The notes under the pieces are model-generated. The model was given only the letters and a program-made list of their open reading frames with translations, had not been told where the DNA came from and did not search any database. A stretch of DNA of 64,000 nucleotides from assembly GCA_002269645.1 (NCBI GenBank), contig NIVC01002739.1:1-64000 (forward strand), written 5' to 3'. Origin of the DNA: Macrostomum lignano. Its lineage: Eukaryota. The translations under genes were made by a program, and so were the position numbers. Of this stretch, positions 3,781-37,700 are shown one piece after another. Within the stretch, counting starts at the first letter, position 1; each line of letters opens with the position of its first letter.

Positions 3781-5589
3781 GCGCTCACTAGCTGCAGTCA
3801 ATTTGTCCGCTCCTCCGGGCCAATCCAGCTCGACCCGACCGTCAGTAGTTTCTTCATCAGCGAGCCCGGCTCAGCCTCCATCCAAGACTGCCTGCTCAGC
3901 TGCCGGTCGAAGGGGTGTGTCGCAGTCAGCCTGCTGCGGGCCAGCCGCATCTGCCAGCTGCTCTTCGTCGAGGACGCCTCGCGGACTGCCGGATCGCCGC
4001 GCAGCCACGCGTGGAGGTCACTGGGATCCGAGGCTGGCGCCGAGGTGTGGAAGGCGGTCGACATCGACAGCATCATCGACTCCAGGAGGCTCAACATCAC
4101 GCTGGAGTTTTCAAGTGAGTCGCCTGATTAATTCAATAAAGTTTAAAGCAATGAAGGCGTTTTAGAAAAGTGAGTTGGCGGATTCGACGTCCTAACACTC
4201 GAGCGAGTTAAGCAGGATTGGCTGCTGGCCTTGCAAGCTTGTTGGTGCATTTTATTCGATTTTGGGAGCCTGCGAATCTTCTAAGAAACACTAGGGATGC
4301 CAGCTACAAAGAGGATACCAGCTACAGAGGAGGCGCCAGCTACAGAGGGTACAGAGGGGGCGCCAGCTACAGAGGGGGCGCCAGCTACAGAGGGGGCGCC
4401 AGCTACAGAGGGGGCGCCAGCTACAGAGGGGGCGCCAGCTACAGAGGGGGCGCCAGCTACAGATGGGGCGCCAGCTACAGAGGGGGCGCCAGCTACAGAG
4501 GGGGCGCCAGCTACAGAGGGGGCGCCAGCTACAGAAGAGGCGCCAGCTACAGAGGGATGCCAGCTACAGAGAAGATGCCAGCTACAGAGAGGATGCCAGC
4601 TACAGAGGGGGGCGCCAGCTACAGAGGAGGCGCCAGCTACAGAGGGGGCGCCAGCTACAGAGGGGACTGCAAAACTGCAAAACCCGCAGACTCGAGCACA
4701 GGTACGAACGGCTCCATCCTGCAGCTGTCAATCAACGTGACAGGCTGCTATCGAATTAAGGCAGCAGGAGCCGCTGGCGGGTTCAACAGTTTCCACAATC
4801 GAGTCGGCGGCAGAGGCGCCTTCGCAGCTGGACGCTTCAAACTCGCTGCCGGAGCGCGACTGTCAATCGTGGTGGGCCAGGCTGGCGGCCCGACAACGCT
4901 TGGCAACGCTGGTGCTGGCGGAGGCGGTGGTAGCTTCGTGTACATGACTGGGAACGGCCAGCTGCTGCTGGCGGCAGGCGGCGGTGGCGGCGCCTCATCC
5001 TGGGCTTCAGGTGAGAAGCGGGTCTTATCTTCGAAAACTATAGCCAGGGTCATAAAAAGCATTTTCTCTTCTTTCGGCAACAACAGGCTGTCAAGGACTG
5101 GCCGCCAGCACTGGTGGCGACTCGAACGGCGGTAACAAGCTGAACACTGGCTACGGCGGCAAAAACGGCCAGCCTGGCAACAACGGCAACGGCAGCAATC
5201 CGGACTTCGACGGCGGCTGCGGCGCCGGCTGGCTGGGCATGGCGCCCCGACGAACCAATGCCGGGCACGGAGACTCTGGCGGTGATCGCAGCGTCGGTTG
5301 GATCGGCGGCGCGGCTGGCAGCGGCGGCGGCGGTGGCGGCGACGGCGGGTTTGGCGGCGGCGGCGGAGGTGGACGCTCAGTTGGCGCGGCTGGCGCTGGT
5401 GGCGGCTACAGCGGCGGAGGCGCCGGGACCGGCGCTTATCACTCCGGCGGCGGAGGCGGCTCTGTCTGCGGCGACGGTGTCACCGGTGGCAGCGACTGCA
5501 TCCTCATGGATGGCGACGTCATGGACGGCTCAACCGTTCAAGGCCGGGTGACGCTTCAGCTTCTGCCAGACGCTGAGTCAGCCTGCTGA
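3781..5589 (+). CDS. PAN/apple-like domain plus ALK/LTK-type glycine-rich domain protein (no TM or kinase); first exon uncertain
   Basis: Exons 3781-4114, 4690-5010 and 5087-5589 join in phase 1/1. The first encodes CLLSCRSKGCVAVSLLRASRIC (PAN-like Cys spacing). The later exons encode YRIKAAGAAGG..LSIVVGQAG..GGGGGSFV..LLLAAGGGGG..GGFGGGGGG..GGGYSGGG, the motif order of the ALK/LTK Gly-rich domain. Stop at 5587-5589. A candidate signal exon (MTAKYHVLLLLV...) lies near 3613-3670 but its donor is unclear. Confidence 0.8.
4306..4665 (+). repeat. 18-bp minisatellite GCCAGCTACAGAGGGGGC in intron
   Basis: Tandem unit inside intron 4115-4689; the same family occurs at 19548-19690 and 27868-29110. 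Confidence 0.95.
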
Positions 5590-7331: not shown

Positions 7332-9324
7332 TCACTCTGGCTCCACAGTGACAGCAGCTGTCAGTTCGCTGTTGCTGGGGTTATACACTCCCCCCGCTGG
7401 TTCCCACTGCGGACATGCGGTTCTGCGCGTGGGTGATGAGAGAAGCAAAGAAATAAAAAAGAAGGAAGATGGACAGACAAAGTGCATTAGCGCTTTCGAT
7501 AGGTGCACACTAGCTTTGCCTGTAACTTGACCTTAGCTTCACATTGACCTGAAGGCTTAAAATAACTTCGTTAGCAACCGTCGGAAAAAACTCACTTCAC
7601 AACGATTAGGGTTAGTGAATTCCCAGACTCCTTGATGAGGCTGGATGCTTGGGCGTGGCTCAACTGACGGGTTTTCTGACCGTTCACCGACTGGATGGCG
7701 TCTCCAGAGTGCAGCTTGCCGAAGGCTGCGGATTCGGGCTCGACCTGGCACAGTGCGGGCGGCTCTGGGCATTTAGAACAGAACTGTAGGGAAAGACAGG
7801 CAGACACTGAGACAGACACTGAGACAGACACTGAGACAGACACTGAGACAGACACTGAGACAGACACTGAGACAGACACTGAGACAGACACTGAGACAGA
7901 CACTGAGACAGACACTGAGACAGACACTGAGACAGACACTGAGATAGACACTGAGACAGACACTGAGACAGACACTGAGACAGACACTGAGACAGACACT
8001 GAGACAGACACTGAGACAGACACTGAGACAGACACTGAGACAGACACTGAGACAGACACTGAGACAGACACTGAGACAGACACTGAGACAGACACTGAGA
8101 CAGACACTGAGACAGACACTGAGACAGACACTGAGACGGACACCGAGACAGACACTGAGACAGACACTGAGACAGACACTGAGACAGACACTGAGACAGA
8201 CACTGAGACAGACACTGAGACAGACACTGAGACAGACACTGAGACAGACACTGAGACAGACACTGAGACAGACACTGAGACAGACACTGAGACAGACACT
8301 GAGACAGACACTGAGACAGACACTAAGACAGACACTGAGACAGACACTGAGACAGACACTGAGACAGACAATGAGACAGACACTGAGACAGACACTGAGA
8401 CAGACACTGAGACAGACACTGAGACAGACACTGAGACAGACACTGAGACAGACACTGAGACAGACACTGAGACAGACACTGAGACAGACACTGAGACAGA
8501 CACTGAGACAGACACTGAGACAGACACTGAGACGGACACCGAGACAGACACTGAGACAGACACTGAGACAGACACTGAGACAGACACTGAGACAGACACT
8601 GAGACAGACACTGAGACAGACACTGAGACAGACACTGAGACAGACACTGAGACAGACACTGAGACAGACACTGAGACAGACACTGAGACAGACACTGAGA
8701 CAGACACTGAGACAGACACTAAGACAGACACTGAGACAGACACTGAGACAGACACTGAGACAGACAATGAGACAGACACTGAGACAGACACTGAGACAGA
8801 CACTGAGACAGACACTGAGACAGACACTGAGACAGACACTGAGACAGACACTGAGACAGACACTGAGACAGACACTGAGACAGACACTGAGACAGACACT
8901 GAGACAGACACTGAGACAGACACTGAGACAGACACTGAGACAGACACTGAGACAGACACTGAGACAGACACTGAGACAGACAGTGAGACAGACACTGAGA
9001 CAGACACTGAGACAGACACTGAGACGGACACTGAGACAGACACTGAGACATACACTGAGACATTTCAACTCAGTAAAAAATCGAATTCACCTTCATAACG
9101 GTCAGCTGAGTCCTGTAGTCAGCTCCGCCTTGCAGCCGGAAGCCCCACATCTGATTAGCCGAACGTTGCAGCGACACCTGCACAGGGGCTTGCGGATCTG
9201 CTTCCGGGTGTTCCTGGTGCTGCTGGTGCTGCTGGTGAGGCTGATAAGGCTGGTGCTGATGCCCTGGTCCGTGAAATTTGGAAGAGACTGCTGACACAGG
9301 TCTGGCTGCAACCGCGTATAGCAT
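7332..9324 (-). CDS. PDZ-domain protein of Zasp/PDLIM (ALP/Enigma) type; 5' end uncertain
   Basis: Exons ~9324-9091, 7744-7596 and 7422-7332 (phases 0, 2) give VQVSLQRSANQMWGFRLQGGADYRTQLTVMK-VEPESAAFGKLHSGDAIQSVNG..LSHAQASSLIKESGNSLTLIVVK. WGFRLQGGxD is the PDLIM-type carboxylate-binding loop. Stop TGA at 7334-7332. Confidence 0.8.
7797..9062. repeat. 12-bp minisatellite GACAGACACTGA (~105 copies) in the PDZ gene intron
   Basis: Near-perfect tandem array; source of the SVSV/DTET/CLSV ORFs. Confidence 0.97.
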
Positions 9325-10443: not shown

Positions 10444-11722
10444 CCGTGAGATAAAGGCAGATTGGAGTGAGATAACGGCAGACTGGAGTGAGATAATGGC
10501 AGACTGGAGTGAGATAAAGGCAGCTTGGAGTGAGATAAAGGCAGCTTAGAGTGAGATAAAGGCAGATTAGAGTGAGATAAAGGCATCTTGGAGTGAGATA
10601 AAGGCAGCTTAGAGTGAGATAATGGCAGACTGGAGTGAGATAAAGGCAGACTGGAGTGAGATAAAGGCAGACTGGAGTGAGATAAAGGCAGCTTAGAGTG
10701 AGATAAAGGCAGCTTGGAGTGAGATAATGGCAGACTGGAGTGAGATAAAGGCAGCTTAGAGTGAGATAATGGCAGACTGGAGTGAGATAAAGGCAGAATG
10801 GAGTGAGATAAAGGCAGGATGGAGTGAGATAAAGGCAGATTGGAGTGAGATAAAGGCAGATTGGAGTGAGATAACGGCAGAATGGAGTGAGATAAAGGCA
10901 GATTGGAGTGAGATAACGGCAGAATAGAGTGAGATAAAGGCAGCTTGGAGTGAGATAACGGCAGAATGGAGTGAGATAAAGGCAGCTTGGAGTGAGATAA
11001 CGGCAGAATGGAGTGAGATAAAGGCAGATTGGAGTGAGATAACGGCAGATTGGAGTGAGATAAAGGCAGATTGGAGTGAGATAAAGGCAGCTTGGAGTGA
11101 GATAAGGGCAGAATGTAGTGAGATAAAGGCAGCTTGGAGTGAGATAACGGCAGAATAGAGTGAGATAAAGGCAGCTTGGAGTGAGATAAAGGCAGATTGG
11201 AGTGAGATAAAGGCAGATTGGAGTGAGATAACGGCAGAATGGAGTGAGATAACGGCAGATTGGAGTGAGATAACGGCAGAATAGAGTGAGATAAAGGCAG
11301 CTTGGAGTGAGATAACGGCAGAATGGAGTGAGATAAAGGCAGATTGGAGTGAGATAACGGCAGATTGGAGTGAGATAAATGCAGATTGGAGTGAGATAAA
11401 GGCAGCTTGGAGTGAGATAAGGGCAGAATGGAGTGAGATAAAGGCAGCTTGGAGTGAGATAACGGCAGAATAGAGTGAGATAAAGGCAGCTTGGAGTGAG
11501 ATAAAGGCAGATTGGAGTGAGATAAAGGCAGATTGGAGTGAGATAACGGCAGAATGGAGTGAGATAACGGCAGATTGGAGTGAGATAACGGCAGAATAGA
11601 GTGAGATAAAGGCAGATTTGAGTGAGACAACGGCAGATTGGAGTGAGATAAGGGCAGAATGGAGTGAGATAAAGGCAGGATGGAGTGAGATACTGGTAAA
11701 GGCAGATTGGAGTGAGATAAGG
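10444..11722. repeat. 21-bp minisatellite GGAGTGAGATAAAGGCAGATT (~60 copies)
   Basis: Direct; 7-aa periodicity in the overlapping ORFs. Confidence 0.97.
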
Positions 11723-12205
11723 GTGTTAAAAGACAGCTTATTATTTATTGCAGCAAATATCAACTGTTTAGTGTTTTTGTTTGACACGACTGAAAATGCT
11801 TGTTAGAAAAAGCAACTAAGATTTAAGAAAAAAGCATACAGAAAAACGTGGTTATTTGTTCCTACAGCAAGATTCATTAAGAATTTCTCATGTTTCTTTG
11901 ATTTGCGGATCGTTAAAAATAAAAATTATTTTTTTCGGAAGACTTTGAATAAAATTTGAGTAGCTTTAATTGAAACACATAGTGATAAGTTTTTTTTACA
12001 TTTATTTGAGGTTGAATGCGTCGAAAACTGACTTATTTAAATTTAAATATTTTTACACCCAATAACTACCATAGACTATTCTCATAGCTTTATATTTGTA
12101 TACTTCAGTAAATAAACCTCAGAAATTTCCCGCCAGTTAATGACCATAGAGTTTTGGCCATAGACTAAGCCAAATGACTTCAGCTCGTAGATAGACCGTA
12201 GCTCC

Positions 12206-12518
12206 TTAGCCTTCGCCGAACTTGTCCATAATGCAATGGTACTCCAAGTGAGCCCGACCAATAACCCGAGCTCCATGGCAAACCAGGCCTTTGCAGCACT
12301 GTACAGTAAAGAATGGAGTGCGACAGGGTTCCTCTGCCTTAGCGCACCTAAATGGTAGACATGCGCGTGTTTTCACTTGTTTACAGTGTATATGGAGTCT
12401 GTCATGACAGGAAGCGCGATGCTTACTTGACAGTTCGAACTGCAGCTGCGATATGGGTGCCGGAGACAAGCAGGAGCAGCAGAACTTGAAGGATGATCAG
12501 TTTCTTAAGAACTTGCAT
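12206..12518 (-). CDS. Secreted knottin (ICK)-like peptide 1, 77-aa precursor
   Basis: Exon 1 12518-12427 (MQVLKKLIILQVLLLLLVSGTHIAAAVRTV, signal-peptide-like, donor GTAAGC), 79-bp phase-2 intron, exon 2 12347-12206 (K-CAKAEEPCRTPFFTVQCCKGLVCHGARVIGRAHLEYHCIMDKFGEG*). Cys pattern C-x6-C-x8-CC-x4-C-x14-C. Confidence 0.8.
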
Positions 12519-12749
12519 GATCACAGACCCTGAGACACTTATCTGTGCTTTCTGGCTGAGAATCGGTATCCAAGTGAAAACTTCTTGCGGCTCAAAAGTA
12601 TTTGAAACCAGGAAATTTATAGAAATTCCTTTGCCAAATTCGAATTCTAAATAGTAAATACATTTTTTTAATTCCTGAGCATTCCGTGCCTGGCTTGAAA
12701 ATAATTTTAATTCTTTTTTTCATTTAGAACGAAGAAAGTTTATAGAATT

Positions 12750-13329
<580 letters not shown>

Positions 13330-13954
13330 TAGTTAAAAGCGGCATTTACCTTTTAAAGTTGTATTTCAATCAAAAGTTCTGCATTTACTACTTATAGTAC
13401 ACAAATAAGATTATGCTAGTAATTAACGAAAAACAATATCCTTCCTAGTCAGCCGTGTGCCATATGCTCCGCTATCAGAGACAGCTTATGCCTCACTATC
13501 AGCTCATTGATCTGTATCTGTGCCCGGCATCTCTGAAGCTGAGCCCACTTCATTGCGCAACCTTTGATCAATCGATCTGACAGATGAAATCTTGGGCTCT
13601 TAGAATTTGAAACGCTGACTGGGTTCAAATGAATTGTTGCGCTTTCGTTTTGATAATATTATACTTGACTGAGAATTGTCTTTGCTTCAATTTCTAGTTT
13701 TTCGCAATCAGTTTTTGCTTGAATGCATCTCCGTTTCCATTCTGGAAGACTGGCTGGGGGGAAGAGGTCATGACCCGATTAAGACGGTCGTATCTCACAT
13801 ATCTCATATCTGGCAATGGCGGTTCTGGCTTAAATAGAGAAAACAAAAAAGTTTCAACTTTATCACGAAACTGTTGCTAAAGGATCTGTTGCGTTGACTG
13901 TCAGTCATGTAAATGTGTCAGGAGCTTAATTTATGTGCGTCAGGAGCATAAATG

Positions 13955-15212
13955 GTGTGTGTCAGGATCTGCATGTATTGTGTCAGGATCTCGAAGTATT
14001 GTGTGTCAGAATCTCAATGTGTGTGTCAGGATCTCGATTTATTGTGTGTCAGGATCTCGATTTATTGTATGTCAGGATCTCGATGTATTGTGTGTCAGGA
14101 TCTCGAAGCAATGTGTGTCAGTATCTCAAAGTATTGTGTGTCAGGATCTCAAAGTATGTGTGTCAGGATCTCGAAGCATGTGTCAGTACTCAAAAAATTG
14201 TGTGTCAGGATCTCAAAGTATGTGTCAGGATCTCGAAGCATGTGTTTCAGGATCTCAAAGCATGTGTGTCAGGATCTCAAAGTATTGTGTGTCAGGATCT
14301 CAAAGCATGTATGTCAGGATCTCAAAGTATTGTGTGTAAGGATCTCAAAGTATTGTGTGTCAGGATCTCAAAGTATGTGTGTCAGTATCTCGAAGTATGT
14401 GTGTCAGGATCTCGAAGCAGTGTGTGTCAGGATCTCAAAGTATTGTGTGTCAGGATCTCAAAATATTTTGTGTCAGGATCTCAAAATATTTTATGTCAGG
14501 ATCTCGAAGCAGTGTGTGTCGGGATCTCAAAGTATTGTGTGTCAGGATCTCAAAGCATGTATGTCAGGATCTCAAAGTATTGTGTGTCAGGATCTCAAAG
14601 TATTGTGTGTCAGGATCTCAAAGTATGTGTGTCAGTATCTCGAAGTATGTGTGTCAGGATCTCAAAAATTGTGTGTCAGGATATCGAAGCATGTGTGTCA
14701 GGATCTCAAAATATTGTGTGTCAGGATCTCGAAGCAATGTGTGTCAGGATCTCAAAGTATGTGCGTCAGGATCTTGAAGCATGTGTGTGTCAGGATCTCA
14801 AAGTATTGTGTGTCAGGATCTCAAAGCATGTGTGTCAGTATCTCAAAGTATGTGTCAGGATCTCAAAGAATGTGTGTCAGGATCTCAAAGAATGTGTGTC
14901 AGGATCTCAAAGCATGTGTGTCAGGATCTCAAAGTATGTGTGTCAGGATCTCAAAGCATGTGTGTCAGTATCTCAAAGTATGTGTGTCAGGATCTCAAAA
15001 TATTGTGTGTCACGATCTTGAAGCAGTGTGTGTCAGGATCTCAAAGTATTGTGTGTCAGGATCTTGAAGCATGTGTGTCAGGATCCCGATTTATTGTGTG
15101 TCAGGATCCCGATGTATTGTGTGTCAGTATCTCGAAGTATGTGTGTCCGGATCCCGAAGTATGTGTGTCCGGATCTCGAAGCAATGTGTGTCAGGATCCC
15201 GAGTGTGTGTCA
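13955..15212. repeat. Degenerate ~21-24-bp minisatellite (GTGTGTCAGGATCTCAAAGTAT)
   Basis: Direct; explains the Cys/Val-rich ORFs in three frames. Confidence 0.95.
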
Positions 15213-16011
15213 GAGCTAGGTGCCTGACTACATTGAGCCATACAAAAAATTGACCCTTGGCTATACAACTAAAATGATAAAATTTGTATTCATTTTTAAT
15301 TTCAAAGCCAACGCCAAAAGTCTCAAGGGAGCAGCGCGAGTCGCAAGAGATGGACTCAGCGAGGAAAATCTCGCTCGTAAAAATCTTAGGGAAATGAAAA
15401 AGTTACCCGGACTTGACGTCACGTTTCGCTGTCTCGATCGCTACTTTCCCCCAAAGGCGATTCTTAATTTATGAGTGACGCAACATCTAGCCCGAAATTA
15501 CGTAATCTTTGTCTTGAAATAACTGAAGAAATCTCTAAATGAAAACGAGAGACTTGAAAACTAAAAGCAAAGGAATTAAGAGGCATATCTCAAGTGCTCC
15601 CAATGCGGTGCTTGAAACCTCTCGGCAAATATTCTACCTACACGGGGCCAGTCTAGTAAAGTGAAGAGGGACTCGTGACTTTGTAACCATTATAGCATTT
15701 CACCTTGCAGCCCGGAATGAACAGTCCCTGTTTTGTTTGGGTCAATCACGAGAGAAAAAGTGATTGGCACAATTTTCACCAGAATTCGATTTCTGAACAG
15801 ATATGAGAAAAAAATTGCGTGATTAAAGAGAACTCAGATTTTATTTTAATAATTGTGATTCTCCGAGCAGACGGATGTGTAATTGATTGATGGGATTTTT
15901 GTTATGCTGCTTGGTTGCACAGTTGTGAAAAGCATTAAGCAATTATTTTCTAATCTGGCACTGTGACTGACAGAACTCAGAAGCGAGAATGTTAAGAATA
16001 TATTTTACTTG

Positions 16012-16712
16012 TCTTGGCGCCACTTTGTTACTTGTTTTGGCGCCACTTTGACATCTGCTTTGGCGCCACTTTGTTACTTGTTTTGGCGCCACTTTGACAT
16101 CTGTTTTGGCGCCACTTTGTTACCTGTTTTGGCGCCACTCTGACATCTGTTTTGGCGCCACTTTGTTACTTGTTTTGGCGCCACTCCGACATCTGTTTTG
16201 GCGCCACTTTGTTACCTGTTTTGGCGCCACTCTGACATATGTTTTGGCGCCACTTTGTTACCTGTTTTGGCGCCACTCTGACATCTAATTTGGCGCCACT
16301 TTGTTACCTGTTTTGGCGCCACTCTGACATCTGTTTTGGCGCCACTCTGACATCTGTTTTGGCGCCACTTTGTTACCTGTTTTGGCTCCACTCTGACATC
16401 TGTTTTGATGCCACTGTGTTACCTGTTTGGCGCCACTTTGACATCTGTTTTGGCGCCACTTTGACATCTGTTTTGGCGCCACTCTGACACCTGTTTTGAT
16501 GCCACTTTGCTACCTGTTTGGCGCCACTCTGACATCTGTTTTGGCGCCACTTTGTTACCTGTTTTGGCGCCACTCTGACATCTGTTTTGATGCCACTTTG
16601 TTACCTGTTTGGCGCCACTCTGACATCTGTTTTGATGCCACTTTGTTACCTGTTTGGCGCCACTCTGACATCTGTTTTGGCGCCACACCGACATCTATTT
16701 TAGGCGCCACTC
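16012..16712. repeat. Minisatellite of alternating ~22-24-bp units, core TTTTGGCGCCACT
   Basis: Direct. Confidence 0.93.
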
Positions 16713-17198
16713 TGACGGTTTTAGCGCCTTACTGTCAGCTATTTCGGCTAGTTTAATATAGTCCACTTGTTTCAGTAGGCACTGCTCACTACACAGAACA
16801 GAGTGTAAGGGATTTTAGCAAAAGCGGTGATTCACATCCATGTTTCCAATCCGAAACAGATTTGTTTTGAAACTGTCTACCCTTATAATCAGATAAGCTG
16901 CATCTCGTAGACAAATTCCGTATTCGAAATTGCTTAAACCGCACGCACACCCTAGCAACCGATAATTACAGAAGAGAATTTTGTTAGAAAATATTAGAAT
17001 ATAGTCTTTGTCTGCAATAGTTGCACCCTGTAGAGAGCGTCTGCGTTCCCAGTTTTCTAGTTCGCCGTCGAGTTTCCGGGAAAACTATTTCTTAGATAAC
17101 GCTCCGTCTCTGTCTGCTGTGTTTATCAGACTGGAAACGGTTATAAGCCTCTCCAGAATCTTCGCTCTGCTTCATCAATATTCTCATGATGACAGCTC

Positions 17199-17722: not shown

Positions 17723-18057
17723 CGGTTGCCTGCATAAAATAACAACTAAATTCTGTAAAACACTGGCCTAAGTAAGTCTCTGTAAAATGATTCACAATGG
17801 ACAAATTCACTTTTGCCTTCAGCTTGTAGCAACTAAATTCATAACCATATCGAAACCTGTACCCCCAGGTAGAAATAGACAATATATAGTAACATAAAAG
17901 TCATCTACAGACATCCCAGAATTTTTATTACCTTGTGTAGTAGACGGCAATGACTTACAGAATGCTGCATTCAAATGAATGGTCGCTAAAAATATTGCAG
18001 ACATTGGCATTCACGATAAAAGAAACGAAGTACTAAAATGTAATTTTGAAAGAAGAC

Positions 18058-18280
18058 ACATTGGCGCCCACTTCAGCACACAGTGGCGCCCACCGCTTCA
18101 GCACACGATGGCGCCCACCGCTTCAGCACACAGTGGCGCCCAGTTCAGGACACAGTGGCGCCCACCGCTTCAGCACACAGTGGCGCCCAGTTCAGGACAC
18201 AGTGGCGCCCACTTCAGCACACGATGGCGCCCACCGCTTCAGCACACAGTGGCGCCCAGTTCAGGACACAGTGGCGCCCA
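18058..18280. repeat. Minisatellite TTCAGCACACAGTGGCGCCCAC (same family as 25520-25760)
   Basis: Direct. Confidence 0.9.
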
Positions 18281-18755: not shown

Positions 18756-21004
18756 ATGACGGCACTTTTTCTGCTTTTAGAATTATTGCTGCTTTTAGGC
18801 AGCAGCAAACTTGCAGTAGGCGCTGACAGTCTCTGCTCTGGGCGGCCTGGCTCGCAGTTCTGTCGGGTTGGCGGCGCTCTGGACGTCTCCTGCTCACCCG
18901 ACACCGCCTCTCTGGTGCTCAAATTCCAGAGCGTCGCCTCCTGGCCAGCGTCTCCCGCCTCTCCCGGTCGGGGCCTCGTTGGCTGCGACTCGGTTGACCA
19001 CTTGAAGGTCACCGGCTGGCAAGGCCCCGAGCTTGAGTCCGGGCACACTGCTCAGCTACCGAACCTGTCATCGATGGAGATTCTCGACGGAAATTTAACG
19101 ACCGTTGGGCCCGACGTGTGCGGCAAACGGCTGCGGCAGCTCAGTCTGGCCAGGAATCGAGTTCGGGACCTCAGCCAGCGAGCTCTGATCGGCTGCGGCA
19201 GTCTCGAGTCGCTCGACCTCAGCGACAACCGCATCGAGAGGCTGCCGGACGGCCTGCTGGCCGCCTGCGGATCGCTGAGAACGCTGAAGCTGAGCGGCAA
19301 CCGGCTGAGTCAGCTGGGACCCCGGGCTCTGCAGGTGACTGGCTCAGGCTGCCATTTAACTCGTGTTGCTAGGGGGTGCTGGGACCCCGGGCTCTGCAGG
19401 TGACTGGCTCAGGCTGCCATTTAACTCGTGTTGCTAGGGGGTGCTGGGAGCCCGGGCTCTGCAGGTGACTGGCTCAGGCTGCCATTTAACTCGTGTTGCT
19501 AGGGGGTGCTGGGAGCCCAACTGTGCAATTTCTCATTTTCAAAGAGAGGGGGCACCAGCTACAGAGGGGGTGCCAGCTACAGAGGGGATGCCAGCTACAG
19601 AGGGGGTGCCAGCTACAGAGGGGATGCCAGCTACAGAGGGGGCACCAGCTACAGAGGGGGCACCAGCTACAGAGGGGTGCCAGCTAAAGGGGGGTAGGAT
19701 AAAATCTTAATAGAAGGTTGCCATTCATGCAACTCATGCAACTGAGGCTACTTCACCCAGCCAATTTAAAGCCAAAACTCTGGACATTCAAGCCCCAATC
19801 CAATCTGGTTGAACTCCCGCAGGGCGCCGTCAGCCTCTTCGAGCTGCACGCCCTCGGCAACCAGTTCCGCACGCTGGGCAGCCTCGAACGGGCCTTCGCC
19901 TCCAACCAGAGGCTCAGCCTCATCGACCTGCGCAACAACGAGCTGTTCGCGTACCTACCCGCCTCCGACGACGGCCTCTGTGGTCCCGAGAACGTCACCG
20001 TGCGGCTGCACTTCGCCGGGTGTCCACCGGCTCCAGCGACTGACGCGGCCGTCTGTGAGACGGTGCGGCGACACCGCTGCTTGGGCAGCTCGGCGCACCT
20101 GCTGGTCACCTTCACCAGCTGTCAGGTGAGTCAAGGAATGATTTTGGAGGGACAGAGTAACTCGATGGTAAACTCGCAACGCCCCCGGAGACTTTGTCCC
20201 ACAACGAGTGATGACGGCAATTCTGCGCATTCCTCTGACTCTGAGCACAAGCGCGTCAATACACAGGGTTTACAGCGGCCCTGACTTTCTAATCCTGCTA
20301 GGCGTGTACACTCTCACGGCCCCTCGCGGAATCGATCTGATTGAGACTTATTTTCTCCTCTCACACAGGTTCCCATAGCAACCAAGTGCTCAGTCGTCGT
20401 TTCCGAAGTCCGACCTCCAGCGGTGGTCGCTCAACAACAGCCGGAACCAACTTCGGTTAACGCAACAGCAGCCACACCGACTACCCCAGCCTGTCCCAGC
20501 GTTGTCACGGCAACAGTCGCATCCGACTGTCGATTTTTCACTCGCCTCAGCGAAGCGGCCGTCGCAGCCAAGTCGGATCCAGCCGTGTGGCTGCTGATTG
20601 CCCTGGCCGGCACTGTGCTCTTCGCTCTGCTTCAACTACTCGTCTCTCTTGCCGTCTGTCATCGGTTGAAGCTTCGCTTGGCTCGCCTGCAAGTGCGCGC
20701 CGAGCAGCTGGCCAGAGAGTGCTCCAGCCACCAGTCCTTCTGTCACAACCATCGATCGTCCATGCTGTGTAGTCGGCAGTCCGGTCTCAGCGGAGGTCGC
20801 ATGACCCCTAGCGGTCGGGGACCTTCGTCTCATTGCGGCGGCATCTCGGAGTTCGGCGACTCGACCGTGCCAACCTTTGCGACACTGACGGCGGTGCACA
20901 CGACGCCGCAACAGCCGCTACTGACTGAGAAGCAGGGAGAACCGGACTCTGGCAGCAGCGGCCTGCCCGACTCAGAGGAAGTCCCTCATGGAGATCAGGA
21001 CTGA
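18756..21004 (+). CDS. Single-pass leucine-rich-repeat membrane protein, paralog 1 (~505 aa)
   Basis: Exons 18756-19334, 19823-20125 and 20369-21004, all phase 0. Hydrophobic signal peptide; LRRs (LRQLSLARNRV, LESLDLSDNRIERL, LRTLKLSGNRL, LSLIDLRNNEL); Cys-rich cap; Thr/Ala stalk; TM (VWLLIALAGTVLFALLQLLVSLAVC); low-complexity tail with no TIR domain. Confidence 0.85.
19312..19520 (+). repeat. Three tandem 65-bp copies of the exon 1/intron 1 junction, each with a CAG|GTGACT donor
   Basis: GT donors at 19335, 19400 and 19465, spaced exactly 65 bp. Confidence 0.92.
19548..19690 (+). repeat. 18-bp minisatellite (GCCAGCTACAGAGGGG family) in LRR paralog 1 intron
   Basis: Direct. Confidence 0.93.
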
Positions 21005-24160: not shown

Positions 24161-24726
24161 AAGTTTCCCAATGTCAGGCTTTCCAGGTATCCAGCTATGA
24201 AATCCATGACACTGGGTCTGCAGATTGGTCAGGTTTATACACTGGGCTGAAGTGTCGCACTGGGTATTTCTTATCTGCACAGGGACTGAATTCGGTGTAA
24301 GCGCAGGTAGTTTTTGTTTTTAGGTTTCAACTATGTGGCTTTTTTACTTCAAACAGTGACTGGTCGCTTAGCCTCAGCGTGACAGTCAAATTGTAATAAA
24401 CTTGGCTTGGGCTAGCTAGATAAGAAATCGTTGCCCAGGCTAAAGTTAAAGCTGACTTCAACCTATATAGTGCTTATGAGCTGTGTTCCCTATCTATACC
24501 AGTGCATACTGAATTCGGCCATGTAAACTTTGTTATTCAATGCCTAGATAAATAATTTTCACAGACTGCACTGACTGAAGGGAAGTGTTTTGTACCGGAT
24601 ATCAACTAGGATAAGGATGCATTCCTCTTGTGATTGTCCCGGGTTCGAAAATCCTTGATCCAAGCTAGCTAGGAATTTGAGTTAACGTTTAGTTTCAAAT
24701 TAGGGGCATTTTCATTGCTAAACTAA

Positions 24727-25030
24727 TTGAGTCATTGTGGTGCCAAACTAATTGAGTCATTTGTGGCGACAAACTATTTGAGTCATTGTGGCGCCAAACT
24801 ATTTGAGTCATTGTGGCACCAAACAAATTGAGTCATTGTGACGCCAAACTAATTGAGTCATTGTGGCGCCAAACTATTTGAGTCATTTGTGGCGCCAAAC
24901 TAATTGAGTCATTGTGACGCCAAACTAACTGGGTCATTGTGATACCAAACTAATTCAGTCATTTTGGCGCCAAACTAATAGGGTCATTGTGGCGCCAAAC
25001 TAACTGGGTCATTGTGGCGCCACACTAATG
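24727..25030. repeat. 25-bp minisatellite GAGTCATTGTGGCGCCAAACTAATT (~12 copies)
   Basis: Direct. Confidence 0.93.
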
Positions 25031-25519
25031 TACCTTCATACGCCAAACTTTAAGCATCTGAAAGCAATAAATATTATGATTTTTTTAAAAAACTATTTGG
25101 TTTATCAAGTTTCACAACTCTGAAGCGTCAGTTTGCAGCTAATTTTGCAAATGCTATTTATTAGTTCCGAGACCAGGTTCAAACGTTCAGACGATTAGCG
25201 CAAACTCAACCGGGTAAGGCGTGTGTCACCGGGTCAAGGTCAGGTGACTTGGCGGTTTATAGCCGTTACAAAAGAGCAGCAATTGAGCAGCTGTTTCACT
25301 ATCCCGGCATTTCCCTTTACCTGGCTTGCGTGACCCAGCGCTTCGGTTGAAGCACATTGAGCAGAACAGGCAATATATGGCACTGATTGATTTATTACCC
25401 GATTCTCTGTAATGCTTTGGCTTAGCATTTTTCATTACTGAACAGGGCATTATTCTTGGCCTGCGTTGCTTGCTGGAGTAGTCTGTGAGTTACAGAGCCC
25501 ACCTCATCAGTGACTCCAC

Positions 25520-25760
25520 TTAGCACACAGTGGCGCCCAATTCAGCACACAGTGGCGCCCACCACTTCAGCACACAGTGGCGCCCACCACTTCAGCACAC
25601 AGTGGCTCCCACCACTTCAGCACACAGTGGCGCCCACAGCTTCAGCACACAGTGGCGCCCACCACTTCAGCACACAGTGGCGCCCACCACTTCAGCACAC
25701 AGTGGCTCCCACCACTTCAGCACACAGTGGCGCACAGGACAGCACAGGACAGCACAGGAC
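25520..25760. repeat. Minisatellite TTCAGCACACAGTGGCGCCCACCAC
   Basis: Direct; same unit family and orientation as 18058-18280. Confidence 0.9.
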
Positions 25761-26835: not shown

Positions 26836-29800
26836 TTATTGCAACTGAGTTTCATACCGCCGACCACGTGACTCGGCGTCATCCTCGATAAACAACTCCA
26901 GCTGTTGAACTTCAACGTGATTCGGGTCGTCGCAATCTGAGGCGCCTTCGACAACAGAGCGGCACCTGCTGTTGCAGCCTGTTCGGCAGTGTGGCGGCAA
27001 GCTTGCTGTCGGCGCTAGAAGCGAGTCCCGACTGTACAGAGTCTGGAAGCGTTTCAGTTGCAGGTCGGCTGCATCAATTCCAGAGCCTAGTAGCGGCTCT
27101 CGGCACACCTGCAGTCGGGCCATCTGCAGCTTCAGCCGATGACAAACCGCCAAGGAGGTGATCAGAATGACTAGACAGAGGGCCACACTGCCAGCAAGGC
27201 TGTACAGCAGCCACACGCCGTCAGGGTAGAGGCCGAATCTGCGGAGTAGCAACGATTCGATGGAGGATACGTCGGTACCGACTTGAAGACTGTTCAAAGT
27301 TGGACAGACAGCAGGCGGTGTTGAGGCCGCAGTCTCTGACTCTTTTCTTGCCGTTGTTGACGCTTTGCCAGTTGGTGAACAGCTTGATTGGTGCATGGAA
27401 TCCAGCGACACCTGACAGCTGGTGAAGGTGACCAGCAGGTGCGCCGAGCTGCCCAAGCAGCGGTGTCGCCGCACCGTCTCGCAGATGGCCGCGTCAGTCG
27501 CCGGAGCCGGTGGACACCCGGCGAAGTGCAGCCGCACGGTGACGTTCTCGGGGCCGCAGAGGCCGTCGGCGGAGGCGGGCAGGTACGCGAACAGCTTGTT
27601 GTCGCGCAGGTCGATGAGGCTGAGCTGCCGGTTGGAGGCGAAGGCCCGTTCGAGCCTGCCCAGCGTGCGGAACTGGTTGTCGAGGGCGTACAGCTCGAAG
27701 AGGCTGACGGCGCCCTGCGGGAGTTCAACCAACGAGATTGGGGCTTTAATGTCCAGAGTCTTGGCTTTGAAATGGATGGGTGAAGTAGCCTCAGTTGCAT
27801 TAGTTGCGTGATTGGCAAACTTTTAGTACATCTTGAATTTTGTCAGGAGCTGCTGTTTAACTGGTGCCACCTGTGTAGCTGGCACCCTCTGTAGCTGGCA
27901 TCCCCTCTGTAGCTGGCGCCCCCTCTGTAGCTGGCGCCCCTCTGTAGCTGGCGCCCCTCTGTAGCTGGCGCCCCTCTGTAGCTGGCACCCTCTGTAGCTG
28001 GCACCCTCTGTAGCTGGCACCCTCTGTAGCTGGCACCCTCTGTAGCTGGCACCCTCTGTAGCTGGCATCCCCTCTGTAGCTGGCGCCCCTCTGTAGCTGG
28101 CGCCCCTCTGTAGCTGGCACCCTCTGTAGCTGGCATCCCCTCTGTAGCTGGCACCCTCTGTAGCTGGCATCCCGTCTGTAGCTGGCATCCCCTCTGTAGC
28201 TGGCGCCCCTCTGTAGCTGGCGCCCCTCTGTAGCTGGCACCCTCTGTAGCTGGCACCCTCTGTAGCTGGCATCCCCTCTGTAGCTGGCGCCCCTCTGTAG
28301 CTGGCATCCCCTCTGTAGCTGGCATCCCCTCTGTAGCTGGCATCCCCTCTGTAGCTGGCATCCCCTCTGTAGCTGGCATCCCCTCTGTAGCTGGCATCCC
28401 CTCTGTAGCTGGCGCCCCTCTGTAGCTGGCATCCCCTCTGTAGCTGGCGCCCCTCTGTAGCTGGCATCCCCTCTGTTGCTGGCACCCTTTGTAGCTGGCA
28501 TCCCCTCTGTATCTGGCACCCTCTGTTGCTGGCACCCTCTGTAGCTGGCATCCCCTCTGTAGCTGGCGCCTCTCTGTAGCTGGCATCCCCTCTGTAGCTG
28601 GCACCCTCTGTAGCTGGCATCCCCTCTGTAGCTGGCATCCCCTCTGTAGCTGGCGCCCCTCTGTAGCTGGCATCCCCTCTGTAGCTGGCATCCCCTCTGT
28701 AGCTGGCATCCCCTCTGTAGCTGGCATCCCCTCTGTAGCTGGCATCCCCTCTGTAGCTGGCATCCCCTCTGTAGCTGGCGCCCCTCTGTAGCTGGCGCCC
28801 CTCTGTAGCTGGCATCCCCTCTGTTGCTGGCACCCTTTGTAGCTGGCATCCCCTCTGTATCTGGCACCCTCTGTTGCTGGCCCCCTCTGTAGCTGGCATC
28901 CCCTCTGTAGCTGGCGCCTCTCTGTAGCTGGCATCCCCTCTGTAGCTGGCACCCTCTGTAGCTGGCATCCCCTCTGTAGCTGGCGCCCCTCTGTAGCTGG
29001 CATCCCCTCTGTTGCTGGCACCCTCTGTAGCTGGCATCCCCTCTGTAGCTGGCATCCCCTCTGTAGCTGGTGCCCCCCTCTGTTGCTGGTGCCCCTCTCT
29101 GTTGCTGGTGCCCCTCTCTTCCTCAGGAGAAATTGCACCGTTGGGCTCCCAGCACCCCCTAGCAACACGGGAAGAATGGCAGCCTGAGCCAGTCACCTGC
29201 AGAGCCCGGGGTCCCAGCACCCCCTAGCAACACGAGGCAAATGGCAGCCTGAGCCAGTCACCTGCAGAGCCCGGGGTCCCAGCTGACTCAGCTGGTTGCC
29301 GCTCAGCTTCAGCGTCCTCAGCGATCCGCAGGCGGCCAGCAGGCCGTCCGGCAGCCTCTCGATGCGGTTGTCGCTGAGGTCGAGCGACTCGAGACTGCCG
29401 CAGCCGATCAGAGCTCGCTGGCTGAGGTCCCGAACTCGATTCCTGGCCAGACTGAGCTGCCGCAGCCGTTTGTCGCACACGTCGGGCCCAACGGTCGTTA
29501 AATTTCCGTCGAGAATCTCCATCGATGACAGGTTCGGTAGCTGAGCAGCGTGTCCGGACTCGAGCTCGGGACCTTGCCAGCCGATGACCTTCAAGTGTTC
29601 AACCGAGTCGCAGCCAACGAGGCCCCGACCGGGAGAGGCGGCCGACGCTGGCCAGGAGGCGGCACTCTGGAAGTTGAGCACCAGAGAGGCGGTGTCGGGT
29701 GAGCAGGAGACGTCCAGAGCGCCGCCAACCGGACAGAACTGCAAGCCAGTCCAATTGTAGCAAGTCATCTTCGCCTCAACCGATTGGCTACCGCTAAACA

Positions 29801-31704: not shown

Positions 31705-33462
31705 ATGCGTCTAGGATGCTTGATGTTGGTTTTTCTGCTTCTGGCGACCAAAGCGATGGGAACTTCCGAGGTAAGCAATTAGGTGAGGAGAGGAGAGGAG
31801 AGGAGAGGAGAGGAGAGGAGAGGAGAGGAGAGGAGGGGAGAGGAGAGGAGAGGAGGAGAGAGGAGGGGAGGGGAGAGGAGAGTAGAGGAGAGGAGAGAAG
31901 AGGAGAAGAGACCAGACCAAAAGCAGAATATGTAGCTGTGAACACTGCAGGCGGAGTTCGAATCGCGGTACAGAGACTGCATCCTGCAGGACACGAACTG
32001 CCCGAATAACAGTAGCGTATACAGCTACCAGCGACTCCTGCCAACTCTGCAGCTGATGCAGCGAAAGAAGCCACCAAGAGAGTGCGACTGCAACATCCAA
32101 AGTGAGGGCTGTGTCAGACGGTGCTTCTATGCCTTCCGACTCCAGCTGGACATTTTGGCTGCGGAGTTCAGGGCTGGCAATGATATGGCTAGGCGTGAGG
32201 TGAGTTCGACCCTGTCCTGAAGTGTTCGACCCCATCCTGAAGTGTTCGACCCTATCCTGAAGTGTTCGACCCTATCCTGAAGTGTTCGAACCCATCCTGA
32301 AGTGTTCGACCCTATCCAGAAGTGTTCGACCCCATCCTGAAGTGTTCGACCCTATCCTGAAGTGTTCGACCCCATCCTGAAGTGTTTGACCCTGTCCTGA
32401 AGTGTTCGACCCTATCCTGAAGTGTTCGACCCTATCCTGAAGTGTTCGACCCTATCCTGAAGTGTTTGACCCTGTCCTGAAGTGTTCGACCCTATCCTGA
32501 AGTGTTCGACCCCATCCTGAAGTGTTCGACCCTATCCTGAAGTGTTCGACCCCATCCTGAAGTGTTCGACCCTATCCTGAAGTGTTCGACCCTATCCTGA
32601 AGTGTTCGACCCCATCCTGAAGTGTTCGACCCTATCCAGAAGTGTTCGACCCCATCCTGAAGTGTTCGACCCTATCCTGAAGTGTTCGACCCCATCCTGA
32701 AGTGTTCGACCCCATCCTGAAGTGTTCGACCCTATCCTGAAGTGTTCGACCCTATCCTGAAGTGTTTGACCCTGTCCTGAAGTGTTCGACCCTATCCTGA
32801 AGTGTTCGACCCTATCCTGAAGTGTTCGACCCTATCCTGAAGTGTTCGAACCCATCCTGAAGTGTTCGACCCTATCCTGAAGTGTTTGACCCTGTCCTGA
32901 AGTGTTCGACCCTATCCTGAAGTGTTCGACCCCATCCTGAAGTGTTCGACCCTATCCTGAAGTGTTCGACCCCATCCTGAAGTGTTCGACCCTATCCTGA
33001 AGTGTTCGACCCTATCCTGAAGTGTTCGACCCCATCCTGAAGTGTTCGACCCTATCCTGAAGTGTTCGACCCCATCCTGAAGTGTTCGACCCTATCCTGA
33101 AGTGTTCGACCCTATCCTGAAGTGTTCGACCCTATCCTGAAGTGTTCAACCCCATCCTGAAGTGTTTGGCTCTTTCGTAAAGTTCCAGTGCTGGCTTTGA
33201 TAAACAAAAATAACGAACTCCCCAAAATTTGCAGCAGTTTACTAATTTCGCCCGTAGCAACATGAATCGCCTTAGGCCTTGCATCCTCGAGGGCAGGAAC
33301 TGTCAGCAAGTGTATGGCCCGTCGCTCAACTACATGTCCGACTGGTTGCGCTACGAGCTCCGGATTAACTACATGCCTCCGGTGTGTAACTGCGACGTGA
33401 ACAATGAAAACTGCGGCAGGCCGTGCATGTACGCCATCCTAAAGTCTGAGGCCGGATTTTGA
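31705..33462 (+). CDS. Secreted protein (~180 aa) with two tandem 6-cysteine domains, family not recognised
   Basis: Exons 31705-31770 (signal MRLGCLMLVFLLLATKAMG, donor GTAAGC), 31951-32199 and 33235/33238-33462, all phase 0. Each of exons 2 and 3 has C-x6-C-x27-C-x-C-x6-C-x3-C. Intron 1 contains a (GAGAG)n tract at ~31785-31910. Confidence 0.8.
32203..33167. repeat. 20-bp minisatellite CCTGAAGTGTTCGACCC(T/C)AT (~48 copies) filling intron 2
   Basis: Direct; begins within the splice donor GTGAGTTCGACCC. Confidence 0.97.
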
Positions 33463-34700: not shown

Positions 34701-37700
34701 CCACCACCGAGCCTGCGAAGAAGACCAAGAGAACGCGTCGAACTCCGAAAACCTTCTATCCGTCATGCGACTCCGCGGCGGCAATAGTGACATTTCAGTC
34801 CACCGCCGCCGGCCGCGCAGGAGACACAGGAGAGCAGCGTCGCGCAAAGCCGAGCCGGACCAAGAGCTCCTTGTGCAGTTTAACTGCAATGGCATCAAAA
34901 GCCGTAATACGGAGCTGGCCCACAGGCTGGCCTCCCTGCGCCCCGCCGCTATACTCCTTCAGGAAACCAAGCTTAAGAAAGAAGAAGATTATAACCCGCC
35001 GCGGGGATACGTGGTGGCCTCCAGGGAAGATGGAGTACATAACGCCGGCCCCGATGACCGCGCTGTCGTGACACCTGCTCACCCAAATCGGCCACCCGAC
35101 GCTAACGGTACAGGCGCCGCCGGGACACGACGCCGTACCAACCCGCGCTGCCGGCTGAGATTCCCAGGACTCCGCGAAAACTGGTGCGCCGGATGTCGCA
35201 GCGGCCGTACCGCCTGTAGCGTCCGTTTCACACCATGGCATGGCGCAGACAACCAATCTGTTCAAACCAGTGCACCCGGACGAGAAATCACCAGCACGCC
35301 ACCAAGGACTACTTAAACGATACTTAAGTAGTCCTTGCACGCCACCGCCAGCCCAGTCCACTATCCCAAAAACCAACAAAAAAATTACAGGACGGGGAGG
35401 TACTATGGTGCTTGTCCGCGATGACGTCCAGTACGACAGACTCAAAGTCGATAGAGAACACGACCTCCTGGACGTTGCCGCCTGCCGCATCCGCCTCAAA
35501 GGACAGCAGCCGATCGTGATAGCATCTATCTATGCACCGCCATCCAGCTGCCAACGCCCCGATAACACCTGGCAACCCAGCTTCACCAATCTCCCGACTA
35601 CCGGTAGAGTCATCCTCGGAGGCGACTACAACGCACACGGAAGCTGGGACCGCCACATTGATGAAGATCTCAGAGGCCAGACCGTCGACGAGTGGGTCGC
35701 CCGCAATGGGCTCGTCATCTGCAATACCACCTGCCACACACGCACCTGCCCCAGTACTGGCCGCCTCAGTAGCCCAGACGTGACCATCTGTAGTAGCACC
35801 ATTGCCGGATCCATCACGGACTCCTGGAAGACGCTACCAGACTGGGGAAGCGATCACCTGCCGATCGTTTTCGGCCTCCCAGCCTCTAACGCCGGAAAGA
35901 CCCGTCACTGCGGGCAAAAACGCTGGATCTATAAGAAGGCAGACTGGGGAGCCTTCAGGGAGTCGCTAAATACCTGGGCAGAATCCGAACGCAACGACAC
36001 CACCTTAAACACAGAGGCCACACGCCTTGCCGAAGCCATCCTGAACGCAGCAAGACTTGCCATCCCGCGCAGCTCCGGGAAAAAGACGAGACGCCTGCCG
36101 TTCTGGAACGACGCCTGCGAGGAGGCCTCCAAAGCTACACGTTCCGCGAGACAATCCGCAGAAAAAGAACCGACACCAGAAAATATTATTGCCGCAAACA
36201 GAGCCCGCCACAACGCCTCAGGCTGCCTCCGGAGGGAGAAAGAAGCCTTCCTGCTCGACAAAGCGGCAAATTTCAGCCAGGACTCGGACATTTTTGGCTT
36301 ACTCCGCGCTATGAGAGGCGATGGTTTTAAAACTCCGGACCCGGCTGCCATTGTCAGGGCCGCCTCCCCAGACTCGCCGGAGCGCACCGCACGCACTAAC
36401 AAAGAGAAGGCCGAACTCTTTTGCCAACTCTACGCCGAAGTTAGCCGAGTCCCCAGACGAAAAAATGACTCGGCCATCAGATACGAAGCGAACGAGGCCA
36501 CTACGCCTATGGGTGACCCCCAAACAGACGGCCCGGACGCCCCTTTCGAGATCGACGAGCTCCGCGCCGCTATCCGATGTCTCAAATCAGGGAAGGCTGT
36601 GGGAACCGACGGTGTCTCCAACGAGATGCTTAAACGCCTCCCGCCGGCCGCTGACAAAGCCTTACTCAGCCTCATCAACCGCACCTAGCGGGAGGGCAAA
36701 ACACCTACCAGCTGGCGAATTGGCACCATTATACCGATCCAGAAAAAAGGGAAAGACGCCGCATCACCGGGCAACTACCGCCCCGTCGCACTTACCAGCT
36801 GCATCGCCAAGTGCGCGGAGCGCATGGTTCTGGCTCGTCTTAACTATGACCTGGAGAGCCGTGGCGGTCTCTCGCTCACTCAAGCTGGTTTTCGTCGCGG
36901 TCGTAGCACCGAGGAACAGCTCGCGCGAGTCTGCCAAGCCATTTTTGACGGCCTCGAGAGTCTACCGGCGCTACGCAGCATCCTCTGCCTCCTCGACTTC
37001 TGCCGAGCGTATGACAGAGTATGGCGCCTGGCCCTGTATGCCAAAATGCACCGCATGGGCATCCCCAAGCGCATCATCCGCTGGATCCGCGGCTTCCTGT
37101 CGGACCGTCACAACGCAGTCCGCTGGGTTAACGCCACGAGCCGCAACAGAGTTTTCCGCGAAGGTCTGCCACAGGGCAGTGTGCTAGCGCCCACGCTGTG
37201 GAATATCTATGTCAACGATTTAGCCCAAGCAGTCGCCGAGGCGAACCCTTTGGTCAACCTCAGTCTCTACGCCGATGACTCGGCCTTACTGGCGACCGCT
37301 CGCACACTCGACATCTGTGCCAGAGAACTCCAACCAGCCCTGGATGCAGTGGCCGACTGGTGCCGAGATTGGAAAGTCTCCATTAGCACTGGGAAATGCT
37401 GCTACTCCACCTTCACTCTAGCGGCAAATGAAAACAACGGCAAACGGAGAGTGAACCTCCAGATCAACGGCGACAAGCTTGCCTTCGATCCAACTCCGAC
37501 CTTCCTGGGACTCAGTCTTGACGACAGCCTAAGTTTCAGCCACCATGCATCAAAGATCCGTAAAAAGATGGCCGCCCGCAGAAGACCTCTCACTGCCCTC
37601 GCTACCAGATCGGCCGGTGCGGACAGTCAGATCCTCCGCATGGCTTACATCGCCACCGTTCGCTCTGTTGCCGACTACGCGTGCGGGGTCTGGGGGTCCT

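Follow-up and report, generated by a model that had tools for sequence, protein, structure and literature searches.

A 64-kb stretch of Macrostomum lignano DNA (64,000 nucleotides of contig NIVC01002739.1, referred to here as the window, in which window and record coordinates coincide) carries on its minus strand a small two-exon gene that we have identified as Mlig023297.g1, the source of the transcript Mlig-pro48. Its product is best explained as a secretory mini-protein of the prostate, most likely a component of the seminal fluid by which the donor would be modestly favoured in sperm competition. The gene itself is already known, as it has been annotated, named and localised by in situ hybridisation, and RNAi has been applied to a sister transcript. 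What is new is solely that a seminal-fluid candidate filed under 'No Blast Hit' has a six-cysteine framework resembling that of inhibitor cystine knot (ICK) peptides. This offers a concrete and cheap hypothesis for research on sexual conflict in Macrostomum, with a peptide that is small enough for synthesis and folding.

Gene structure, transcript identity and genomic copies

The gene extends from 12518 to 12206 and its joined CDS of 234 nt is in frame, yielding a 77-residue precursor (MQVLKKLIILQVLLLLLVSGTHIAAAVRTVKCAKAEEPCRTPFFTVQCCKGLVCHGARVIGRAHLEYHCIMDKFGEG, followed by the stop codon). The locus comprises the following features.

12616..12621, minus strand: TATAAA box, directly upstream of the annotated transcript start and kept in the homeologous copy
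12519..12602, minus strand: 5' leader (5'UTR), open in frame in the window copy, with the translation NTFEPQEV...
12427..12518, minus strand: coding part of exon 1, 92 nt, from the ATG at 12518; Met1 up to the second base of the Lys31 codon, covering the predicted signal peptide and a short linker
12441..12518, minus strand: predicted signal peptide coding region, residues 1-26, if the cut follows AAA
12348..12426, minus strand: intron, 79 nt, GT..AG (GTAAGC...TTTAG), interrupting codon 31 past its second base
12206..12347, minus strand: coding part of exon 2, 142 nt including the TAA at 12208-12206; Cys-rich domain and tail ...IMDKFGEG
12233..12346, minus strand: six-cysteine core CAKAEEPC...EYHC, spaced C-x6-C-x8-CC-x4-C-x14-C; sequence CAKAEEPCRTPFFTVQCCKGLVCHGARVIGRAHLEYHC
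12125..12536, minus strand: Mlig-pro48 in situ probe region (RNA815_29684.2), bounded by exact matches of the primers given in Table S11 of Brand et al. 2020
12001..12205, minus strand: 3'UTR as far as the AATAAA at 12006-12001, the first canonical poly(A) signal; another one, ATTAAA, follows at 11970-11965

The two-exon layout with its 12427/12347 junction, which the first-pass annotation had read from the letters of the DNA, has proved exact, as seen from the reading frame of the CDS, from the join annotated for the GenBank protein PAA55534.1 and from the length of the Mlig-pro48 probe. PAA55534.1 (BOX15_Mlig023297g1, Mlig023297.g1; labelled 'partial', 105 aa, contig positions 12206-12602) consists of the exact 77-aa protein of the window preceded by 28 residues translated from the leader 12602-12519. 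Since the GenBank annotation of this assembly has no other source than genome-guided RNA-seq assemblies (StringTie/TACO, TBONE) combined with TransDecoder ORFs (Wudarski et al. 2017, PMC5730564), the annotated join across the intron constitutes transcript evidence. The 'partial' label and the 28 extra residues are explained by the leader being open in frame in the window copy; in the homeologue g2 the leader is closed by an in-frame TAA and lacks 3 bp, and for this reason the ATG at 12518 is taken as the true start.

The link to the published transcript has been established at the level of the primers. In Table S11 of Brand et al. 2020 (PMC7336406), Mlig023297.g1 corresponds to two transcripts from an older de novo transcriptome, RNA815_29684.2 (Mlig-pro48) and RNA815_29684.1 (Mlig-pro54), both of which are labelled 'prostate' there, after Weber et al. 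2018. Each of the two in situ primers of Mlig-pro48 has an exact match in the window, one at 12536-12515 and the other at 12125-12145, and their spacing amounts to 412 nt in the genome versus 333 nt in the published cDNA probe. As this gap equals exactly the 79-nt intron (412 - 79 = 333), the removal of the intron is confirmed independently of the genome. The gene of the window is Mlig-pro48, the same gene without any difference, and the exact primers, the fit of the probe length and the Table S11 mapping place it by sequence within the prostate-limited series Mlig-pro1-76 of putative seminal fluid proteins. Regarding the sister transcript, the forward primer of Mlig-pro54 falls at 12247-12226 with 1 mismatch, which corresponds to the M71V variant of the UniProt entry A0A1I8GX63, and the reverse primer can be aligned, near 11894-11912, only if indels are allowed. 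Because of this mismatch and these indels, Mlig-pro54 is assigned to a third, slightly diverged but near-identical copy in a recently duplicated genome. Since the reverse primer of Mlig-pro54 (661 nt) is collinear with about 11894-11912, at least one other copy has a form with a longer 3'UTR.

The gene had been described as hidden, being too short and too split for most automated annotation. This description is wrong, as the gene is represented by PAA55534.1, by PAA93352.1, by A0A1I8GX63 and by the published Mlig-pro48. These three proteins form the single cluster returned by the protein search, all of them from Macrostomum lignano. The homeologue PAA93352.1 (BOX15_Mlig023297g2) has 77 aa and is located on a 1.39-Mb scaffold, and the third variant, A0A1I8GX63, which carries M71V, has been named 'Secreted protein' in UniProt. 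The window and g2 loci are collinear with ~94% identity over 20 kb and ~99% around the peptide gene, in exons, intron and flanks alike, and the two coding sequences differ at 2 positions (1 synonymous, 1 leading to P38A). As exons, intron and flanks are equally conserved and the coding differences are only two, the comparison of g1 with g2 is uninformative on selection. Among the three protein variants (P38A, I60F, M71V) every replacement lies in the mature part and none in the signal peptide, which hints at fast evolution, with differences too few for a test.

A tBLASTn search had been proposed as well. Within the window, tblastn of the precursor has returned the gene alone, with the self-match for exon 2 at 12349-12209 and no paralogue elsewhere in this stretch; a weak match at 29843-29763 has been rejected as a paralogue, as it corresponds only to the signal peptide of a leucine-rich repeat (LRR) protein. 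Likewise, no orthologue has been found: a word-indexed search of 5.8 billion proteins returned the gene's own cluster only, and an exhaustive phmmer search of 1.84 billion representatives returned this cluster and one spurious tandem-repeat protein. The latter (E = 1e-6) has been rejected as a distant homologue, being a translated tandem repeat in which one 18-residue stretch is matched seven times and the Cys framework is not conserved. As no orthologue has appeared in any database searched, the function receives no comparative support. An Rfam scan of the window gave no match.

The precursor and its cysteine framework

The N-terminus of the precursor displays the three regions of a signal peptide, with an n-region of basic character (MQVLKK), 12 hydrophobic residues as the core (LIILQVLLLLLV) and a c-region (SGTHIAAA) that has small residues at -3/-1. 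The Kyte-Doolittle maximum reaches 2.85 at residues 9-19, and the -3/-1 rule permits cleavage by signal peptidase after residues 19-26. No membrane anchor or retention motif has been found in the precursor sequence. The n-, h- and c-regions, the -3/-1 sites and the UniProt name 'Secreted protein' agree in predicting secretion, for which the sequence argues strongly. The signal peptide, the spacing C-x6-C-x8-CC-x4-C-x14-C and the terminal Gly are thus present as claimed in the first-pass annotation. The start of the mature peptide at Cys32, which it had likewise assumed, is unsupported: no dibasic site precedes Cys32, and the permitted cleavage sites all fall after residues 19-26, so that the secreted form probably keeps part or all of ...VRTVK ahead of this residue. 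The product predicted on this basis has ~50 residues, ~5.7 kDa, six cysteines and a basic character (predicted pI ~8.7). The precursor ends in ...FGEG directly before the stop, where the Gly is a potential amide donor for processing by peptidylglycine alpha-amidating monooxygenase.

Whether this framework belongs to the knottins has been addressed by cysteine order, by sequence and profile searches and by structure prediction. The order C-C-CC-C-C within a peptide of ~30-50 residues is found at 12346-12233, and a relaxed version of the pattern turns up a single time in the six frames of the 64-kb window, at the peptide gene, with 0.06 +/- 0.24 occurrences per window expected from block-shuffled windows. 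The classical ICK consensus is CX3-7CX3-6CX0-5CX1-4CX4-13C, and knottin collections allow wider ranges. With loops of 6, 8, 0, 4 and 14 residues, the peptide fits this consensus in loops 1, 3 and 4 and exceeds it by 2 residues in loop 2 and by 1 residue in loop 5.

Searches for similarity to an established knottin or toxin family, in Pfam, in PDB sequences and among the 1.84 billion representatives searched with HMMER, have returned none. In Pfam, neither the precursor nor the mature part matches a family at E <= 10. In the PDB sequence search nothing was significant (all E > 0.9); the weak matches include two O-superfamily conotoxins, aptotoxin, a Ly6/uPAR protein and an unrelated enzyme, with the best knottin matches at E = 1.2-3.8. 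Two single-sequence AlphaFold2 (AF2) models have been computed, of the precursor (pLDDT 68) and of residues 27-77 (pLDDT 74.5), both of moderate confidence. The model of the mature part is all-beta with four strands, and Cys V and Cys VI are placed on a long C-terminal hairpin, an arrangement that is compatible with an ICK fold and also with other small disulfide-rich folds. Two Foldseek searches of the PDB with these models, whose confidence makes a negative outcome less than decisive, gave no match at E <= 0.001; the lowest value, E = 2.6, was obtained for a sea-anemone beta-hairpin peptide, followed by three-finger, EGF-like and tachystatin A structures at E = 6.3-9.9.

The proposal of an ICK peptide has therefore been borne out in its cysteine order, and a significant knottin match in sequence or fold searches is what it lacks. 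Like conotoxins of framework VI/VII and spider ICK toxins, Mlig-pro48 is small, has six cysteines in the order C-C-CC-C-C and a signal peptide followed by a Cys domain, and is predicted to adopt a beta-rich fold with Cys V/VI on a C-terminal hairpin. Unlike them, it shows no significant sequence, profile or fold similarity to the group, its loops 2 and 5, of 8 and 14 residues, exceed the lengths of the classical consensus, and it is produced in a male accessory gland instead of venom or immune tissue. We thus describe the framework as ICK-like, with a putative knot connectivity of I-IV, II-V and III-VI in which the last bond would pass through the ring; a disulfide-rich fold is suggested by the models, and the assignment to the knottins, which derives from the cysteine spacing, is unproven. 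Full-text searches found no literature linking Macrostomum lignano with knottins, and the few matches to knottins combined with seminal fluid proteins, or to inhibitor cystine knot combined with flatworms, were not on this topic as far as their titles and abstracts tell.

Prostate expression and the probable role in the ejaculate

The expression data are those of Weber et al. 2018 (PMC5977470, BMC Evol Biol 18:81), in which candidates were transcripts that positional RNA-seq had shown to be restricted to the tail and that responded to the size of the social group; the name Mlig-pro1-76 denotes those that whole-mount in situ hybridisation has found expressed exclusively in prostate gland cells. 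The Mlig-pro48 transcript has been reported from prostate gland cells only, as tail-limited and up-regulated under sperm competition. The same paper names 29684.1 and 29684.2 as probable forms of one protein, both with 'No Blast Hit', and notes that prostate-limited transcripts may represent production machinery and not ejaculate. The word 'cysteine' is absent from PMC5977470, and the Cys framework is unmentioned in Weber et al. 2018 and 2019. In the literature search, 'Mlig023297' and 'Mlig-pro48' were absent from main texts, and no entry for the gene exists in the supplementary material of Wudarski 2017, Grudniewska 2018 and Brand 2022.

Functional data are available for the sister transcript. 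Weber et al. 2019 (PMC6953679, Ecol Evol 9:13889) have applied RNAi to 18 prostate transcripts including Mlig-pro54, all with bioinformatic evidence of secretion. For Mlig-pro54 the paternity share of the second donor (offensive paternity, P2) dropped from 0.67 to 0.57, a weak effect that lost its significance on FDR correction (z = -2.08, unadjusted p =.04, FDR-adjusted p =.24), with fertility and defensive paternity (P1) unaltered, and the authors regard pro46 and pro54, the latter termed 'unannotated', as candidates in need of confirmation. The region covered by the pro54 dsRNA is collinear with the window from 12247 to about 11894, which comprises the last coding bases and the 3'UTR. Because of this collinearity, and because the two assembled copies are ~99% identical there, the pro54 dsRNA would be expected to silence the window copy as well. 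A preprint on mating behaviour under RNAi (10.1101/734301) concerns pro46 and pro63 only.

Taking these data together with the predicted properties of the peptide, the following course may be proposed. The gene is transcribed in prostate gland cells, probably from a TATA-type promoter, and the single intron is spliced out, giving the 77-aa precursor, whose signal peptide would direct it co-translationally into the ER and thus into the secretory pathway of these cells. Oxidation would then lead to a ~5.7 kDa beta-rich mini-protein, probably with three disulfides and possibly amidated at the C-terminus, which would be stored in the prostate secretion and delivered together with sperm via the stylet at copulation. 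In the female antrum of the partner it might act on the antrum itself, on sperm, whether stored or of a rival, or on the behaviour of the recipient, and a small gain in the offensive sperm competitiveness of the donor could result. In this scheme the gene, the transcript and the tissue are established, and the transfer, the target and the effect on paternity are hypothetical. Small disulfide-bonded seminal peptides that alter the physiology of the partner are represented by the Drosophila sex peptide and by the allohormones of hermaphroditic snails. The likeness of Mlig-pro48 to them is a functional analogy only, as all are short peptides secreted from male accessory glands, are restricted in their taxonomic range, lack detectable homologues and have a proposed action in the recipient, and the influence on competitive paternity that is hinted at for pro54 agrees with this analogy. 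Mlig-pro48 differs from these peptides in that it has no sequence relationship to them and in that its own transfer, receptor and phenotype are putative.

A more specific version of the seminal-fluid reading would make Mlig-pro48/54 a lineage-restricted true cystine-knot mini-protein, recruited to or arisen in the male accessory gland and transferred to the partner, where it would bias sperm use as a venom-type ligand of an ion channel or receptor in the antrum or nervous system. We consider this improbable; it would, if true, amount to a 'knottin allohormone' in the ejaculate of a hermaphrodite, convergent with venom peptides. The ICK-like framework could explain the hinted second-donor paternity effect.

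Among the readings that compete with a seminal-fluid component, a toxin-like or defence peptide had been put forward in the first-pass annotation. It would be a genuine ICK peptide of gland cells, employed in prey capture, predator deterrence or immunity and acting on ion channels or microbes, and it draws on the C-C-CC-C-C order, the signal peptide, the one-intron layout of signal and mature parts, two to three ICK peptides among the non-significant PDB matches (E = 1.2-3.8) and the all-beta AF2 model with Cys V/VI on the C-terminal hairpin, as in ICK folds. The published expression data do not support it: the in situ signal is confined to the prostate, with none from the pharynx or from rhabdite, epidermal or adhesive glands, and expression increases with the size of the mating group. 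Because this localisation is exclusive to prostate gland cells, and because such socially plastic expression is typical of seminal fluid genes, a reproductive role is preferred over venom or immunity. Moreover, no significant knottin or toxin match has emerged from Pfam, PDB sequences, Foldseek or the 1.84 billion representatives, and loops 2 and 5 lie beyond the classical ICK ranges, so that we judge a toxin or defence peptide highly unlikely. Another reading is that of a protective seminal component, an antimicrobial or protease inhibitor guarding sperm and ejaculate in the antrum of the partner. The ejaculates of insects and mammals commonly contain small antimicrobials and protease inhibitors rich in cysteine, and the peptide is small, basic (pI ~8.7), disulfide-rich, secreted by prediction and prostate-expressed, with a weak Foldseek match (E = 9.9) to tachystatin A, an antimicrobial ICK-type peptide. 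However, it has no homology to a defensin or inhibitor family, and the sole hinted phenotype concerns competitive paternity and not fertility, which leaves a protective function as an unlikely explanation.

The caution of Weber et al. 2018 about production machinery, together with the weakness of the RNAi effects, speaks for a product of the prostate cell that would not be passed on as an active factor, for instance a packing or structural constituent of the secretory granules. As the clear signal peptide, the lack of an anchor or retention motif and the very small size suit a released product better, we assign such a role a low probability. A chance ORF with fortuitous splice sites is suggested by nothing beyond the small size of the gene. 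It is excluded by the RNA-seq-derived annotation at two loci, the independent de novo transcript with the intron removed, the published in situ signal, the intact ORF in three sequence variants and the rarity of the pattern in shuffled sequence.

The repeat-rich surroundings of the gene

The peptide gene is situated on a unique island of ~1 kb, bordered by a minisatellite of a 21-mer in 60 copies (10446-11720) and by a (TGTC)n microsatellite of ~145 copies (12749-13329). From this microsatellite to the TATAAA at 12616-12621, which we infer to act as a promoter element, the distance is ~130 bp only. The prostate-specific promoter may thus occupy very little sequence, or it may include the repeats, and a compact promoter might serve as a prostate-specific driver for transgenesis.

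Large and regular minisatellites have further been observed at 60158-63564 (20-mer, 170 copies, 93% identity), 7801-9062 (12-mer, 105 copies, 98%), 13914-15198 (23/45-mer, 57 copies) and 32204-33166 (20-mer, 48 copies), and they yield long spurious ORFs in several frames. A GGCGCC core is common to several arrays, at 16010-16716, 18056-18280, 24720-25029, 25516-25733 and 59595-59824. Two copies of an LRR_8 gene with a signal peptide are inverted relative to each other and lie ~8 kb apart, at 18756-21004 on the plus strand and at 29852-26836 on the minus strand. Both copies contain internal 18-mer minisatellites (GCCAGCTACAGAGGGGGC; 19545-19695 and 27861-29119), the same repeat recurs at 4299-4665, and the homeologous locus has an LRR gene (505 aa) at the equivalent relative position.

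A non-LTR retrotransposon occupies 35240-38974 on the plus strand, with an Exo_endo_phos_2 endonuclease ORF at 35240-36688 and a reverse transcriptase and RNase H ORF at 36824-38974, and a HTH_32 transposase-like fragment is located at 38675-39244 on the opposite strand. At 4218-5589 on the plus strand, ORFs preceded by the 18-mer repeat weakly resemble the glycine-rich domain of ALK/LTK (PF12810, E = 1.2e-5) and may represent an exon of a receptor-type gene. Towards the other end of the window, an ORF at 58983-59480 on the minus strand matches the C-terminus of an acyltransferase (PF16076, E = 6.7e-7) and probably represents the final exon of a gene resembling those for lysophospholipid acyltransferases.
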